In this document: positions 22,109 to 29,100 of the stretch, in pieces
Position numbering within the stretch: position 1 is the stretch's first letter
How the letters are laid out: each line of letters starts with the position of its first letter
Sequence record: MN871447.1
Reading direction: 5' to 3' (one strand)
Length of the DNA stretch: 64,000 bases
Made by a program: the position numbers and the translations under genes
Notes under the pieces: generated by a model
Database searches by the model: none
The model's input: only the letters and a program-made list of their open reading frames with translations
What the model was told of the DNA's origin: nothing

Positions 22109-22141
22109 AAAATAAAAGAAAGAGAGGCCAACGCCTCTCTT
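22109..22141 (-). terminator. Terminator after the protease gene
   Basis: agagaggc-caac-gcctctct stem; duplicate of 19046..19078. Confidence 0.75.
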
Positions 22142-22147
22142 TTCTAT

Positions 22148-22894
22148 TTACCAACGTGCAACCAGACCACTTTTCCCGGAAAGTAAGGTAGCGCGATCTA
22201 AGTTACGAATCGCATCAATCGTCCCTTTAAAACTGGACTCTACCGAAACCAGACTTTTATCTTCCGCCATACTACGAATGATTGCCGGTTGAACCGGAAC
22301 CACCAACGCCGATTCGCAAGACGGCGACATGTATTTGTTCGCAACAGAAAGACCCGGTTCGTTAACGAGATCCCAGGTGATGATGTTATCAACGTACTTA
22401 CGTACCTTCCCGCCCACGACTCTGTCGGTCGCCATGCTGCGAATACTGAAGGCCAGATTCTCGTCCGGGTTAGCCATGATTTTATCAAAGTCATCACGAC
22501 GTGCACCAGTAGAACAGACTTCGCCCATGATCGCGCAAATGCGCTGACCATTCGGTAACACGAAGTTCGGTACTACCCAAACTTTACGGATATGGATCGC
22601 CCAGTTCCGCTCATCAATCGTGTGGATGCGCTGAATGAACTTACGGTAGTCAGGGTAGTCATACTCTTTTGGATGACCCCACTCACCACGCAAATACCCT
22701 TCGTTAATCCGCTTCTGGAACAAGCCGTTTGCAGCGAGGATACGTTCTACACGCTGCTGGTCATAAACTGCCCCGATGCTGTTATCAAACTCTAACGCAC
22801 CCAGGATAACTTCCAGGTAGTTATTATCGAGGCGTTTAATGTTACCGACCCGGTTCACTCCTTTCAGCGCCGTTACTTCAAATGACATTCCCAT
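22148..22894 (-). CDS. Prohead (head maturation) serine protease, phiKZ gp175/SPN3US gp245-like
   Basis: LRGEWGHP (catalytic His), IDERNWAIHI, FSIRSM (catalytic Ser) and ITWDLVNEPG motifs. Start moved to MGMSF (22894), just after the upstream gene's stop. Confidence 0.85.
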   Translation of the reverse strand: MGMSFEVTALKGVNRVGNIKRLDNNYLEVILGALEFDNSIGAVYDQQRVERILAANGLFQKRINEGYLRGEWGHPKEYDYPDYRKFIQRIHTIDERNWAIHIRKVWVVPNFVLPNGQRICAIMGEVCSTGARRDDFDKIMANPDENLAFSIRSMATDRVVGGKVRKYVDNIITWDLVNEPGLSVANKYMSPSCESALVVPVQPAIIRSMAEDKSLVSVESSFKGTIDAIRNLDRATLLSGKSGLVARW

Positions 22895-22898
22895 GATT

Positions 22899-23624
22899 TC
22901 ACCATCGTACAATATTAGAGAAACTCGACTCATACGAAAGCAGTCCCGCCTTGCGTTCCTTGGCAGCGTTGAATTCTGTCTTCGATAACGGGAACATCTC
23001 AACTTGGCTTTGGTCGAACGGCTCTTCTTTGTACCGTTCTAGCGCAGGGAGCACCATCTGATAATACCCGCGTTTCAACGAAAAGAACGGCGAGAACTTT
23101 AAGGACGGACCCGTCACCTCAATGAGGATTCGGGTTTCAATACTTTTCTGGTAGTCATCTTTGATCAAACGAAGTTCGTCGATAAAACACTTCCCGACGA
23201 CCCGCGCTGGGTAGGGTTGGTCTTCCTGATCGACATTCACTAACCAACGTTCTTCTGACCACTCTGCCATCGGGCAGATAGATTTCCCTGGTCGCAAAGA
23301 ACCCTCTACATCAATGGCGTAGATCGTATAGCCACCGAGCCATGTGTCATCACCCGCGCAGTGGGCTTTACTGTCGAGAAAGTCCCGTAACGCGACACCG
23401 TATCCTCGCAGACAATCCACCACAGTGATTCCGGTACAAACCCGTTTCACACTTTCATCTTCTCCCGCCATCGTCCGTTGAATTTCACGCGGAACGAAAA
23501 CGTCGATCTTTGGATTAGGCGAGATATGATAAAGGACGCGGTGGTGCGTATCGACCTGTAAGGCGTTGATGGCGTGCTCTTGCTGTTTACGGACGAAAGC
23601 AGTTAACCGTTCAAATGGTGACAT
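22899..23624 (-). CDS. ADP-ribosyltransferase-fold-like protein (tentative)
   Basis: LYHIS..F.PR...RVCTG.T..DCL.G...YTIYAID...SEERWL spacing matches ART strands 1, 2, 4 and 5. Confidence 0.4.
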   Translation of the reverse strand: MSPFERLTAFVRKQQEHAINALQVDTHHRVLYHISPNPKIDVFVPREIQRTMAGEDESVKRVCTGITVVDCLRGYGVALRDFLDSKAHCAGDDTWLGGYTIYAIDVEGSLRPGKSICPMAEWSEERWLVNVDQEDQPYPARVVGKCFIDELRLIKDDYQKSIETRILIEVTGPSLKFSPFFSLKRGYYQMVLPALERYKEEPFDQSQVEMFPLSKTEFNAAKERKAGLLSYESSFSNIVRW

Positions 23625-23626
23625 AC

Positions 23627-24352
23627 TTACGCCCTCAAGAGTCGTTCAATCGGCTGCGTGACTTCGTTAGGGTTCACAATCGCCGAATCCAAGCCATCGC
23701 CAGTGTAGCTCCCTGAGATCTTCGCTGTGGTATCAGACGAACCATCAATTACGTTACGTAACGGAATCCACGTGAACGGCGTTGTTTTGAGTTCGTTGTA
23801 GCTGAAGAGTTTCTCACGAAGTGGGACTTTACGGTCATGCGATAAACGCGCAATCTGTGCGATAATCATCTCGCCGATGGTCGGGGTCGCCACCAATTGC
23901 GTACCGGTGTATTTTTTCGTTTCTTCAAAGAACCCGCTGAGCGAGATATAGTTGTAGAAGAATGGGATTCTTCCTCGGGCCAGAATCTCTTCAAACAGGT
24001 AATAAAGAAGGGTGTTGTCTTTGACCAGGTTCAAGTTTTTGATCACGGTACTACCGGGAGTAAAATGGAAGTCGTAATAGCTCCGACCTTGGTACTCTAA
24101 CTGACGAATTTCAGCCGGGGCGATTTCCATCATACTGGGTGTGGTTGAAACTGCGTATTCACCCGCTTCGTTACAGATCGCAAAGAAGCCGATGATCATA
24201 ATACGCTTACCCATACTGATCAATTGTTTTGCGCGAAAGGACTCTTGGATCACAATCCGGCAGCCGGTCGTAGTGACCAGACTGCCGTTTGGGAGTTCAC
24301 GTAACGTCGCTTTCATCGCATCAGGTTTATGTTTCCACTGAGCGATATCCAC
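23627..24352 (-). CDS. rpoC: Virion RNA polymerase beta' C-terminal subunit (SPN3US gp244/phiKZ gp176-like)
   Basis: The C-terminal WIPLRNV...DTTAKISGSY..DGL.SAIVNP...IERLLR resembles the beta' C-terminus, and the position is syntenic. Confidence 0.65.
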   Translation of the reverse strand: MDIAQWKHKPDAMKATLRELPNGSLVTTTGCRIVIQESFRAKQLISMGKRIMIIGFFAICNEAGEYAVSTTPSMMEIAPAEIRQLEYQGRSYYDFHFTPGSTVIKNLNLVKDNTLLYYLFEEILARGRIPFFYNYISLSGFFEETKKYTGTQLVATPTIGEMIIAQIARLSHDRKVPLREKLFSYNELKTTPFTWIPLRNVIDGSSDTTAKISGSYTGDGLDSAIVNPNEVTQPIERLLRA

Positions 24353-24363
24353 ACTCGACTCCT

Positions 24364-25896
24364 TTAAGCTACCGTAACATCATCCGCTTCGATGATACCG
24401 ATCTTTTCCGCTGCACTGAAACTCAGGACGTCAAAGTTGGCCACTAACCATTTCGCCAGGTAACGTACCGCGGCGGTATAGGCTGCGGTAGTCCCGTCTT
24501 CCTGATTCTCTTGCATCTCCGTTTCCACGATGTCGATAATGTCCTCGGCATCGATAAAGGTGAAGATGTGCTGGCAGACTTTCTGTTTGACTAACTCGAA
24601 CAGGTTCGGGTCGTTGTCAATGTTCCAGTTAACGTAAAACTTACCGGACTTGAGATCTTCAATCACCCGTGCCATCGCTTCTTCTTTACTGAAGCCACCC
24701 GGGAGTTGGTCATCGTTCAGTTCACCCAGCGCTGCTGAAAGTTCCGGTACGAAACAGTTAGATAGGCGTTTAAGGAACGTGTCGCGCGAATAACGTTGAC
24801 GTTGCACTTCGAGTGCCTGCCAGCGTTTAAGGTTCAGTTCATTATTGGACAGGAACTGGGTCAGTAAACGCTGACCGCCTTTCGGGTCTAGAACGCCGCC
24901 AATCACGCTCTCCGGGGTTAAACCCTGGCTGAGCCCCTGACGGTAGACCGGGCCGAATACAACGATCTCTGCGTCTTCTGAGGTCGTTGCAATCTGACTT
25001 TTACCGGTGAAGCGAATCACCAGCTGTCCACGACGACTGCAACCGCTGAGCCAACCCAGGCCGTTCTGAATCAGGTAGCCGTACTGGAGTTTCATCGCGT
25101 TGATCGTCGCGTTGAATTCCGGTAAGGTTAACCCGGTACCCGGCAGCGGGTCTTGACTAAAGCTGTCAATCAGGAAATAGGTAATAATACCCAGATCAGT
25201 CATTGACGCATCGGTAAAGGTACCAACACAACGCTGGCCTTCTTTCTGCTGCACTAAACCAGCAATGAACCGGGTCACCGGACAAACCGGTACAACCGTC
25301 TCGTTACGGAAGAGGACGTTGTAGATTGCAACAACGGTATCGGCGCCGTATTTCGCAATAGCATCCGCTAACCCGTCGTCCAGTTCGCTCACACCGGTCT
25401 TCATTCCGTCAATCAGATCGACGTCAGTTTTTTCCGGGGCATTTTTGATTCGGGTAAACAGCGGCGCATTCGGTTTGTACTGACCGAACGTATCGATGAC
25501 GTACGGGTTGTAGATGATCGGCGACGGGTCGTATTGAGTGATGGTGAACTCTTTCGGTTCCACACCCTTCATGCGATCGAGGATCTTCCCGGTAACGTCG
25601 CTGATCAACGGAACAACGGTGTTACGGACATACCCGATCTGACGCAGTAACGCTCCGCCGACTACCTCTGCTGCACCGGCCACCGCTCCTTCGTGCGGTT
25701 CCGCCATCCCAATGGTACGCTGGGCGTTGTTGAACAACACCGCGTCGTAGTTCTCCATGGACGGTTTATGGCTCTGGAAGAGCGGTAAAGATTCGGCCAC
25801 CGGACTAAACATCACGCTACCGGTGCGCGGGAAAAGAAACAGTCCTTCATTACTGACGACCGTTTTCGCCAAGGCGATAGATTTTTTATTTAACAT
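24364..25896 (-). CDS. Virion head/ejection protein (SPN3US gp243/phiKZ gp177-like)
   Basis: 510 aa, syntenic position, N-terminal PSMEN candidate protease site. Confidence 0.55.
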   Translation of the reverse strand: MLNKKSIALAKTVVSNEGLFLFPRTGSVMFSPVAESLPLFQSHKPSMENYDAVLFNNAQRTIGMAEPHEGAVAGAAEVVGGALLRQIGYVRNTVVPLISDVTGKILDRMKGVEPKEFTITQYDPSPIIYNPYVIDTFGQYKPNAPLFTRIKNAPEKTDVDLIDGMKTGVSELDDGLADAIAKYGADTVVAIYNVLFRNETVVPVCPVTRFIAGLVQQKEGQRCVGTFTDASMTDLGIITYFLIDSFSQDPLPGTGLTLPEFNATINAMKLQYGYLIQNGLGWLSGCSRRGQLVIRFTGKSQIATTSEDAEIVVFGPVYRQGLSQGLTPESVIGGVLDPKGGQRLLTQFLSNNELNLKRWQALEVQRQRYSRDTFLKRLSNCFVPELSAALGELNDDQLPGGFSKEEAMARVIEDLKSGKFYVNWNIDNDPNLFELVKQKVCQHIFTFIDAEDIIDIVETEMQENQEDGTTAAYTAAVRYLAKWLVANFDVLSFSAAEKIGIIEADDVTVA

Positions 25897-26087
25897 TACA
25901 CGATCCCCTCTTGAACACGACGCGCGGCGATGGCAGCACCAATGGCGGCGGCCAGGTCTTCTTCGATGTTAGCGCCATCGGGGATTCTGAGGTCTTCGCT
26001 ACGGGCATCAAGCATAATGCGACGCCCTACTTCGAGAATATTGGCGACGCTAGTCTGCGCAATTTCCTGTAAACCTTCGTTATTCAT
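25896..26087 (-). CDS. Small hypothetical protein
   Basis: 63 aa, AAGG RBS, abuts the next gene's start. Confidence 0.55.
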   Translation of the reverse strand: MNNEGLQEIAQTSVANILEVGRRIMLDARSEDLRIPDGANIEEDLAAAIGAAIAARRVQEGIV

Positions 26088-26162: not shown

Positions 26163-29100
26163 TTACTGTTCATTATCGTAGGCTTTCAGCATCTCCTGCT
26201 GAATGTTTTCAATAAGAACGTTACCCATCCCAAGGAGTAATGCGGAGTTTACGATACGTGCGTTGATCGCGCGATACGAGAACTGAAGGTCGATGTCCCA
26301 CGGTTCTCCGCCAGGCAGTACAGGGTTACGTGTACGGCAAATACCGTTATACACACCACTTACCACCGACTTCTTCTGGTTACCCACCACCAGTTTATCG
26401 CCGTCCCCCATACCACGCTGATGCGTGATATAAATACGAATCGCCATCATATCAATCTCTAACGGCAAACCGTCGATCCGGCTCGGCGTGAAGACCTGTC
26501 CGGTCGGACTCGTTTCTTGCTTGAGTACCTTGACGTTTTTCGCACGAATCGCGTCGTATTTATCCGCCACCTTACGAACCGAATCCGACATGTCCTCTTT
26601 CTCACCGAAATAGAACACCTCAATCTTCTCAACCGTTCCTACGTGTTTTGCACGAGGGGCTGGGTTACCGAGTCGCGCTAAGGTTTCCATAGAACTGGCA
26701 TCAAAGTAATCAAAGTTCGCTGAGATTTCGTCTTCGATAAACGCGAGGGTGTCGTCGATGTCAACGTGTTGTCCTTCGCTCACCAAATTACGGATTGCCT
26801 GATTAAAGTTCACCATCAGGACACGGGTATGCGTCACCAACGTCGCCATCTTCTTAGAGAGCCGTTCTGAAATCAGACTGGCGTCTTCGAAGGTGTTGTT
26901 GTTTTCCATCAACGCGATGTTTGTGGTGATCCCGTTCTTGAACGCGACCTGACCTGGCTCACGCCAGTCTTTCGCAAAGAACCCCGGATGGTAAGCGATA
27001 ATGGTATCCTTCTTCACGCTCGCACCGACTTCCAGATCACAACGCATCTCATGCGGGACGGTATGACCTGTCACGATACCGAACTTACGTCCAATCTCGA
27101 TACGGTCTTCACCGAGCGCGGGATCATCGTATTTCACGACAACGTAATTCTTTCCTTTCTCTGTTACCACGCCCTGACCTTTTGCGCTGGCAGCGAAAAG
27201 ATCATCATTACGGTGGGCCATCATTAACTCGTAACCCGTGCGGATATAACCGAGGTCATCTCCTACACTGCTTATTTTGTGGCTACTCTGAATACCGATA
27301 AAGTTAACGCGCTTCGGGTCGTCATAAGTCGCAAAGGGTGATACCAATGCGCTAGTAGAAAGGATATTACTAAACCCTTTCTCTTTACTCAGGTCTTTCT
27401 CAGTCCGTGCTGTACCACGTAAACTGGTGAGGTTAGGGTTCGCTGACAGGAAGCAGTTAATCCCAACGTCGCCGTTATCCACCGAGGATTCAGAACGAAT
27501 ACCAATATCACTCGGATGGAACGCACGGGTACGTCTCGTCATGGAACGCTTACCGCGGCCGCCAGTACCGGAATAAGTCAGGTTCTCTTTCTCTTTCAGG
27601 TTTTGGATAGGGTTAGAATCTTCTACCAGAGAAACAGAGGGATCTTTCTGTATCGCGGACAATACCTCGAACGGTGGGAAATCCAAAGACGCCCTTGAAC
27701 TGAGGTTACTGGAAGATTGTCTCCGGACGGCTTCTGAGAAGGTACGGTAGACCGCTCCTGCCATACGCTCGTAACCTTTGAATAACGAGCCCTCTGAACT
27801 CAGGTCACTCGGGTATTCATCGGTCGCCAAGTAAAAGGCGGCTTTCTTCAACAGCGGGATGAACGTGGTGGGTTCGTTCATCATCTCCAGGTTCTCTTCT
27901 GCGATCGGGTCGATAAAGATTGCATTAAGGTTAGTGAACTCGTAGAGATAGCGTCCTGATAACTGCATGTCAGAAAGCAGTGCGTTGTAGTTGTCCCGAT
28001 TGTCCAGTTCTGCAACAGAATAGTTTTTCAGGGCAGCCTTCCACAGAAGCAACGAAGCGTAGATCAAGACATCAGGGTGTGTCTTTCTTGGGATACGCCA
28101 GATCTCATCGGCAAAGACGATCTCGAAGGTATTCGGGTCGGGTTGTACACGCGCCCCTTTCGTTCTCCGTTCCGGCTGAATCTCTAACCCTTCTACCATC
28201 TGACTGAATCCTTCCAGATAAGCCAATACAATGGCTAACGGGAACTCTTGTCCTAAGATAGAGATTGTCACCAATTCATTCGGACGGTCATCTGGGTTAG
28301 CTCCAAGGAGTTTTGCGATATGCCCGAGGTTGTCAGCACCGGCGCGCAGGTAACCCTCTTTATCCATCGTGACCGTAGTTTTCCCGCGTTTTCCTACTGG
28401 GATATCCGTTGTTCCATTCCAATCCGGGAAATTTTTCTTGATGTTCTCGTAGTCGAAAATAAACTGTATGCCCACTGCCTCAAACGAGATGACCTCTTTG
28501 GCGATAGCCGAATAGGTTCTGGGCACCGGTTGGGAATCTTTGAACGAGTTACCGTAAACAATTTCCGTCATGATCGGCGGGTTAGTTAACGCCGCGCGGT
28601 TCATGGCATCTTTAAGCCACTCTCCGTAATCGTAACGACGTTTATCGCTGCGGTCGACAAACAGCTTGCCGTAATACGTGGACAGCGCTACGGTCGATGG
28701 AGAGATCTTACGGATGGGTTTATCAAAACGCAATTTGCGCATGAAGTATTTAATCCCACCGATTTTATATTTCCCATTTTTATCGATGACCGGTAACTGG
28801 AAACGAACCGTAGAAGGCGCGCCTTTAACCGGCGAGATTTTCACCGTGTAATCGTAAAGGTCATTTAACGCATCGACTTGGCGTTCCACTTTAAAGTCGG
28901 TAATGGCAAACCCGGCTTTCTGGAAATTAAGGATTAAATTGATCACGTCCTTTTGCATGACTTCTTTAACGTACTTTTGATCGAAGTCGATCAAGGTACT
29001 TTTTAACATGCTTTTATCTTTGACGTGGGTAATATCCTCGATGACCTTCGGTTCAAAATTCCAGACGACTTCTTTCGGGATCTGTCGGTAGTCTTCCAGC

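Follow-up and report, generated by a model that had tools for sequence, protein, structure and literature searches.

The window analysed here, a 64,000-nucleotide stretch of sequence record MN871447.1, is 100% identical to DNA of the KpLz/KpXa group of Klebsiella jumbo phages and about 77% identical to that of phiKp24. It contains a gene for a 241-amino-acid protein with a predicted resemblance to ADP-ribosyltransferases (ARTs), located between the gene for a beta'C-like subunit of the RNA polymerase carried in the virion (vRNAP) and the gene for the S80 head maturation protease (Table 1). The three genes are tightly coupled, as a preliminary description of this DNA had claimed. The TAA stop codon of the subunit gene is separated by 2 nucleotides from the ATG of the ART-like gene, whose TGA stop codon lies 4 nucleotides before the ATG of the protease gene. 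A scan for terminator-like hairpins found none between the three genes and a strong one after the protease stop codon. Judged from its sequence, this hairpin closes the operon that contains the ART-like gene.

Table 1. Features of the ART-like gene and its neighbours (positions in the window)
Feature	Position	Strand	Basis
ART-like protein gene, 241 aa, phrog_5043 family	22899..23624	-	ORF list, ATG start; phrog_5043 E 9.3e-37
Predicted ART-like catalytic core, residues ~22-213	22986..23561	-	AlphaFold2 model and VIA-align
His33 codon, strand b1, candidate NAD-binding H/R position	23526..23528	-	Conservation and structural alignment starts
Glu125 codon, strand b5, candidate catalytic glutamate, E-x-W motif	23250..23252	-	Conservation and alignment ends
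ART-like protein tail, residues 226-241, A-x-L-L-S, ~10-residue spacer, R-W	22902..22949	-	Trp conservation, co-variation
S80 head maturation protease gene	22148..22891	-	Pfam PF20034 3.9e-62; phrog_3014 7e-69
Protease Glu193 codon, second candidate autocleavage site	22313..22315	-	Protease alignment
Protease Glu218 codon (V-S-V-E|S), conserved candidate autocleavage site	22238..22240	-	Protease alignment
Protease tail, residues 233-247, A-T-L-L-S ... R-W, candidate prohead-targeting signal	22151..22195	-	Trp conservation
Fifth (beta'C-like) virion RNAP subunit gene	23627..24352	-	phrog_2926 6.7e-76; BLASTP
Terminator-like hairpin directly 3' of protease stop	22119..22142	-	10-bp stem, then T-run

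In BLASTP searches, the product of the subunit gene matches phiKZ gp176 (E 3e-53) and SPN3US gp244 (E 4e-25). The latter has been published as the virion RNA polymerase's fifth, beta'C-like, subunit (PMC5694885), and Goslar gp210 is one of five listed vRNAP subunits. The subunit and protease genes are indeed adjacent in the genomes of both phiKZ (gp176/gp175) and SPN3US (gp244/gp245), an arrangement already mentioned when the locus was first described.

Two genes farther upstream, encoding proteins of 510 amino acids (24364-25896, minus strand) and 63 amino acids (25896-26087, minus strand), are, judged by both position and family, the counterparts of Goslar gp209 and gp208. These Goslar proteins are present at an estimated ~280 and ~380 copies, respectively, and are among the most abundant unassigned proteins in virion proteomics. 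Outside the window, a 278-amino-acid ORF (genome positions 27270-28106, plus strand) has an acidic D-N-D-V-P-W end after a Gly/Gln/Pro-rich stretch, and this end recalls the C-terminal tip of single-stranded DNA-binding proteins.

The ART-like protein belongs to phrog_5043, a family annotated as 'unknown function', which it matches across residues 6-198 (E 9.3e-37). An exhaustive HMMER search finds 420 representative clusters of this family at E<=1e-3, a number that falls to 208 at E<=1e-10. By tblastn, the family is present in 61-80 phage records, from phages of Klebsiella, Serratia, Erwinia, Salmonella, Escherichia, Pseudomonas, Vibrio, Proteus and Burkholderia. The slot between the vRNAP subunit and the protease is also held by a family member in Goslar (gp211), RAY (gp169), PCH45, Moabite, PhiEaH1 and phiKp24. 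In SPN3US and CR5, a shorter member is found immediately after the protease gene; the SPN3US representative, gp246, matches the family profile with an hhalign probability of 99.1 (E 8.8e-19). The family gene in Noxifer and FLC9 is tens of kilobases from the protease gene (57 kb in Noxifer). Among 80 IMG/VR loci picked via the protease alignment, 19 have a family gene within 3.5 kb of the protease gene, 7 upstream and 12 downstream. No full-length family member is found in phiKZ or 201phi2-1. The published chimallivirus core gene set includes the two neighbours as cg59 and cg60, and the ART-like gene is not in the set. Because the family is wide, the slot is shared and the gene is absent from the core set, the ART-like gene is, on sequence grounds, accessory but very common rather than specific to this phage. 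The gene had at first been thought new to chimalliviruses, a view that does not survive the 420 representative clusters and the occurrences in Goslar, RAY, PCH45, Moabite and PhiEaH1. A lineage-specific insertion is likewise ruled out by the spread of the family and the use of the same slot elsewhere, and SPN3US carries the gene after the protease.

Several family members have other architectures. Some uncultured jumbo phages (L097:2944-5055 and L098:5001-7520) have a gene of 703 or 839 codons in the slot before the protease, whose product carries a long N-terminal extension, with a SUKH/SMI1_KNR4 domain in one case, and has the ART-like core at its C terminus. Tandem domain duplications of ~490 amino acids also occur, as do fusions in which the domain follows an HNH endonuclease or an enoyl-CoA hydratase-like module (P0014, P0018, P0036 and P0154). 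In a relative of Serratia phage 2050HW (L018; also H21/H69), the family gene is split into ORFs of ~105 and ~141 amino acids, probably by a frameshift or a sequencing error. The phiKZ protein gp283 (NC_004629.1, 257085-257549; 154 amino acids) begins at the b1 motif itself, has the b1-b2 region in common and matches the family with an hhalign probability of 96.3 (E 1.6e-9). Phage proteins of 110-190 amino acids that resemble gp283 occur among BFVD structure matches, so gp283-type proteins may constitute a family of 'mini' ART-like proteins.

The AlphaFold2 model of the 241-amino-acid protein, calculated from a 130-sequence alignment, has a pLDDT of 93 and a pTM of 0.89. Its core comprises strands b1 (residues 29-35), b2 (61-65), b3 (99-106) and b5 (125-128), which are followed by long hairpins. 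In an exhaustive VIA-align search, the matches to this model are almost all ADP-ribosyltransferases. Among them are TreX (Z 5.8, rmsd 3.1, 102 residues aligned) and Scabin (Z 5.5), together with NatT, CARDS toxin, PltA, pertussis toxin, pierisin, MTX and Tpt1, and further ParT, DarT, Arr, diphtheria toxin and PARPs. No Z score reaches 6, which places them all in the middling range on the tool's own scale, and Z gaps of less than 1 are to be read as ties. The evidence for the predicted fold is carried by the uniformity of the match list rather than by single Z scores. A separate model of residues 1-130 (pLDDT 93.4) gives the same picture, as all of its 50 top matches are ART-fold chains. Structural realignment of Foldseek candidates returns TreX, ScARP, Scabin and pierisin with Z scores of 5.2-5.8, and in the ESM Atlas all 30 named nearest clusters are rifampin ADP-ribosyltransferases (Arr), at 0.93-0.94.

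Sequence comparisons are silent on this point. None of the 130 family members matches a Pfam ART family at E<=10, and sequence and profile searches of the PDB and a search of NCBIfam gave no match to the family of the 241-amino-acid protein. Nor did the Arr family turn up when this genome was searched for it. The structural check proposed in the preliminary description is divided: VIA-align finds ARTs, none with a Z score above 5.8, and a Foldseek search of the PDB gives no match at E<=1e-3. We consider an ART fold of the family core to be well supported by the models. The description of the protein as ART-like agrees with the predicted fold and with the presence of a His and a Glu at the catalytic positions.

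The four motifs quoted in that description (LYHIS, RVCTG, YTIYAID and SEERW) coincide with conserved blocks of the family. Position 33, in strand b1, is His in 124 of 130 family members and Arg in the other 6. Glu125 and Trp127 are invariant (130/130), and Arg61 and Glu55 are kept in 129 and 128 members, respectively. Strand b2 (residues 61-65) reads R-[V/I]-[C/S/T]-[T/V]-[A/S]; this is S-T-S-like but mostly contains Cys, and is neither a clear Tyr motif nor a clear S-T-S motif.

The model of residues 1-130 ends 5 residues past Glu125, and subtracting 5 from the ends of the aligned chains leads to a Glu in more than 10 ARTs. We take these residues to be the catalytic glutamates: E129 of pertussis toxin (PT), E112 of LT, E148 of diphtheria toxin (DT), E988 of PARP1, E160 of Scabin, E165 of pierisin, E197 of MTX, E132 of CARDS toxin, E189 of ART2.2 and E1138 of tankyrase-2. 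The alignment starts place His33 on R9 of PT, R7 of LT/CT, R10 of CARDS toxin and H21 of DT. For both His and Glu, the mapping combines alignment end-points with reference residue numbers rather than a printed residue-level superposition. The alternation of His and Arg on b1 separates two classes of ARTs (H-Y-E and R-S-E). To keep an invariant Glu and a near-invariant His/Arg across 130 diverse members is typical of enzymes, which argues against an inactive protein, and the active site is likely to be competent.

The closest structural relatives are thus TreX/TreTu Rhs toxins and the group of Scabin, ScARP and pierisin (Z 5.2-5.8), and the closest language-model relatives are Arr enzymes. The b1 His/Arg and b5 Glu of small bacterial ARTs are at places equivalent to those in the ART-like protein. 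In comparison with the small ARTs, the ART-like protein adds an N-terminal helix pair, long C-terminal hairpins and a C-terminal helix in the model; its middle motif is [C/S]-[T/V]-[A/S], and its b5 motif is T-x-E-x-W rather than [Q/E]-x-E.

The ART-like protein and the protease of this phage share their C-terminal ends. In both proteins, A-x-L-L-S precedes the tail, and both have S-x-E-S-S-F and an R-W end. The terminal Trp is the conserved part of this resemblance. Within the 137 ART-like family members of normal length, Trp is the terminal residue in 106 and is within the last three residues in 120; for S80 proteases, the corresponding counts are 59 and 64 of 66, and Trp247 of the protease is invariant in the protease alignment. 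The echo between the two tails, claimed from the first reading of this DNA, is real, but its E-S-S-F part is local, and what is conserved is the terminal Trp with the few residues that precede it. As a signal of homology, E-S-S-F was rejected; it is missing from the counterparts of the ART-like protein in phiKp24, Moabite, PhiEaH1, PCH45 and Goslar. A role for terminal Trp as a general signal of head proteins was rejected as well. Only 8 of the 339 ORFs in the 302-kb genome end in Trp, only the ART-like and protease genes have an R-W end, and P-S-A-R-W followed by a stop codon is found in two complete ~240-kb relatives in these two genes only.

The residues before the terminal Trp also co-vary within genomes. 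With one entry per distinct protease tail, an ungapped comparison of the six residues before the terminal Trp gives identity at 23/78 positions in true pairs, compared with 10.8 +/- 3.0 in shuffled pairs (P ~1e-4), in a sample that is small and whose lineages are not fully independent. In one IMG/VR lineage, P-P-S-A-R-W is present on both the ART-like protein and the protease. The two Noxifer tails are K-P-P-F-M-S-W and K-P-S-F-M-R-W, although their genes are 57 kb apart, and those of FLC9 are similar. The phiKZ protease, gp175, ends in P-G-F-M-R without Trp, whereas the Noxifer protease ends in P-S-F-M-R-W; phiKZ lacks both the terminal Trp of the protease and a full-length ART-like gene. In the AlphaFold2 model, confidence drops to 36 across the last residues of the 241-amino-acid protein, as would be expected for a free docking peptide.

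The known function of the protease C terminus suggests a role for this tail. An SPN3US protease that lacks its last 26 residues is active in vitro but is absent from proheads, and the authors of that work suggested that it is the C-terminal propeptide that directs the protease to the core of the prohead (PMC7411985). This propeptide is needed for incorporation into the prohead and is removed by autocleavage (PMC7411985, PMC5694885). The ART-like tail resembles the protease end of the same genome and has the same Trp. The propeptide of phiKZ-type S80 proteases (SPN3US gp245, phiKZ gp175) comprises ~55-64 residues, whereas the part shared with the ART-like protein here is ~7-15 residues. Because the tail is shared with the protease and truncation excludes the SPN3US protease from proheads, we infer that this label also serves the ART-like protein. 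In the literature consulted on the phiKZ-type protease, no second protein is described as bearing the tail, and the terminal Trp receives no comment. A Trp tail is missing from SPN3US gp246 and from the forms of 703-839 amino acids. Since SPN3US gp246 is the homologue with the strongest evidence for a location in the head, the tail cannot be the sole route into heads.

Cleavage of the ART-like protein by the protease, which the preliminary description had placed at S-Y-E, is not a feature of the family. In the protease itself, Glu193, Glu218 and Ser219 are invariant or nearly so and form sites of the S-x-E-S type. Glu193 and Glu218 align with AQE-203 and ATE-234 of the SPN3US protease, of which the former is a verified cleavage site and the latter a suspected one (PMC5694885). 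The ART-like protein has L-S-Y-E-S ten residues from its end, and the phiKp24 homologue keeps S-Y-E; therefore, clipping of the last nine residues is plausible in the phiKp24 clade, and judged from these motifs it is possible only there. In the family as a whole, only 44/137 members have [SAG]xE within their last 18 residues, compared with 24/137 in an internal control window, and roughly one member in four has Glu at P1. With such frequencies, maturation by the protease is not a defining property of the family, and the SPN3US homologue is reported as uncleaved.

Published mass spectrometry places homologues of the ART-like protein in virions, which bears out the proposed head location as far as these homologues are concerned. 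Scheuch et al. 2023 (PMC10052503) list SPN3US gp246 as a head protein in their supplementary tables, where it is represented by ~107 spectra in virions and ~122 in tailless heads, numbers that are similar to those of the protease. Its sequence coverage is 73-87%, its N-terminal Met is removed, and it is described as 'unlikely cleaved by gp245' (PMC10052503). Goslar gp211 is detected in virions by 4 peptides and is estimated at ~3-8 copies, which is close to the estimate for the vRNAP subunit gp210 (2026 Goslar structure preprint, Table S4). This low-level detection is the weaker evidence because the preparation also held chimallin and PhuZ. SPN3US gp246 and Goslar gp211 belong to the same family as the ART-like protein, their genes are also beside the protease gene, and both are detected in heads or virions. 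SPN3US gp246 differs in its length of 209 amino acids, in the position of its gene after the protease gene and in the lack of the C-terminal helix and Trp tail. Published work on the two homologues assigns no fold or function to them. The lysate proteomics of RAY and the structural paper on phiKp24, which includes no mass spectrometry, make no mention of the protein. By analogy with these homologues, the 241-amino-acid protein is presumably located in the head.

The preliminary description had compared the protein to T4 Alt. Like Alt, it would be an ART carried in the head of a large myovirus and made as a late product, and this likeness fits the mass spectrometry of the homologues. T4 Alt is a protein of ~70 kDa with a short N-terminal capsid targeting sequence that is cut by gp21 (PMC7411985, PMC5694885). 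In contrast, the ART-like protein lacks an N-terminal propeptide, for the model has a folded helix there, and its candidate address is C-terminal. The N terminus of the SPN3US homologue is intact except for the Met, unlike the targeting sequence of Alt. No sequence similarity was found between Alt and the ART-like protein. Alt may thus be the nearest analogue in function, with differences in size, sequence and the position of the targeting signal. The literature that was searched describes no chimallivirus virion ART.

These observations suggest a pathway in which the ART-like gene is expressed late, on one transcript with the virion RNA polymerase subunit and the head protease, and its product is built into the prohead. 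Most likely, the flexible Trp-ended tail would dock on the same prohead-core receptor that recruits the protease, and in the phiKp24 clade the tail may later be clipped at S-Y-E. The enzyme would then ride in the head and act in an NAD+-dependent manner, either early in the next infection or during assembly. Our own analysis supplies the gene, its synteny and family, the predicted fold, the conserved residues and the conservation and co-variation of the tail, and published work supplies the presence of homologues in the head and the requirement for the protease C terminus; that the protein is catalytic, how its tail acts, whether it is injected and what it targets are our inferences. We regard the chances as roughly even that the gene encodes a head-borne ART-fold enzyme that enters the prohead by means of a C-terminal Trp tail shared with the protease. 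A broader proposal, which we put forward tentatively and consider rather doubtful, is that the Trp-ended peptide is a portable prohead-core address label of nucleus-forming jumbo phages. This label would be recognised by one receptor and used by the protease and by exactly one passenger protein, an enzyme of ART fold that would reach the early infection vesicle together with the genome.

It is also conceivable, if unlikely, that the ART-fold protein is catalytically dead and is a structural or assembly part of the prohead core that, for example, places or times the protease. The gene sits with the protease gene across many lineages, the two proteins have the same tail, the SPN3US homologue is similar to the protease in head abundance, and the ART-like protein has no sequence similarity to ARTs and an atypical middle motif. 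However, the replacement of His by Arg on b1 is the very exchange that distinguishes the two ART classes, heads of phiKZ and 201phi2-1 assemble without a full-length gene, and the gene is outside the published chimallivirus core set. Another reading, slightly less probable again, retains an active NAD+-using enzyme that is not a modifier of proteins like T4 Alt, and whose target is DNA, RNA or a small molecule, or that simply hydrolyses NAD+. The structural neighbours include the guanine- or DNA-specific ARTs Scabin, ScARP and pierisin, as well as RNA 2'-phosphotransferases and the toxins RES/MbcT, which degrade NAD+. By language model, rifampin ARTs are the nearest, and Arg50 and Arg61 are conserved in the b1-b2 loop. 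Yet the Z gaps among these neighbours are ties, and the classes of target are not discriminated by them.

The shared tail might instead be a handle for the protease, with the ART-like protein as its substrate, inhibitor or passenger that enters the head only via the protease. We consider this improbable. The S-Y-E-S of the tail does resemble the conserved S-x-E-S sites of the protease in this phage, and the two genes are translationally coupled; however, the cleavage-like motif is not conserved, and the estimated copy numbers of the two proteins in Goslar differ ~30-fold. Moreover, the two tails are identical rather than complementary, which indicates a common third partner.

The heads of phiKZ-like phages carry dozens of proteins that have no assigned function and that enter the cell with the DNA. 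To our knowledge, a role has been assigned to only two of the enzymes in these heads, the virion RNA polymerase and the maturation protease. As head cargo, an ART-fold protein would be a concrete, testable candidate for an early activity that modifies the host or the phage itself; these phages are otherwise shielded from their host. The work on SPN3US showed that the C terminus of the protease is required, and left open the route by which the protease finds the core (PMC7411985). With its short sequence, the tail offers a simple point of entry to the question of how both the protease and a passenger reach the core of the prohead. If it is truly an address label, it could be moved onto other proteins to load the heads of jumbo phages. 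The enzyme, if real, would be the first catalytic effector besides the virion RNA polymerase to be assigned to the ejected protein bolus.
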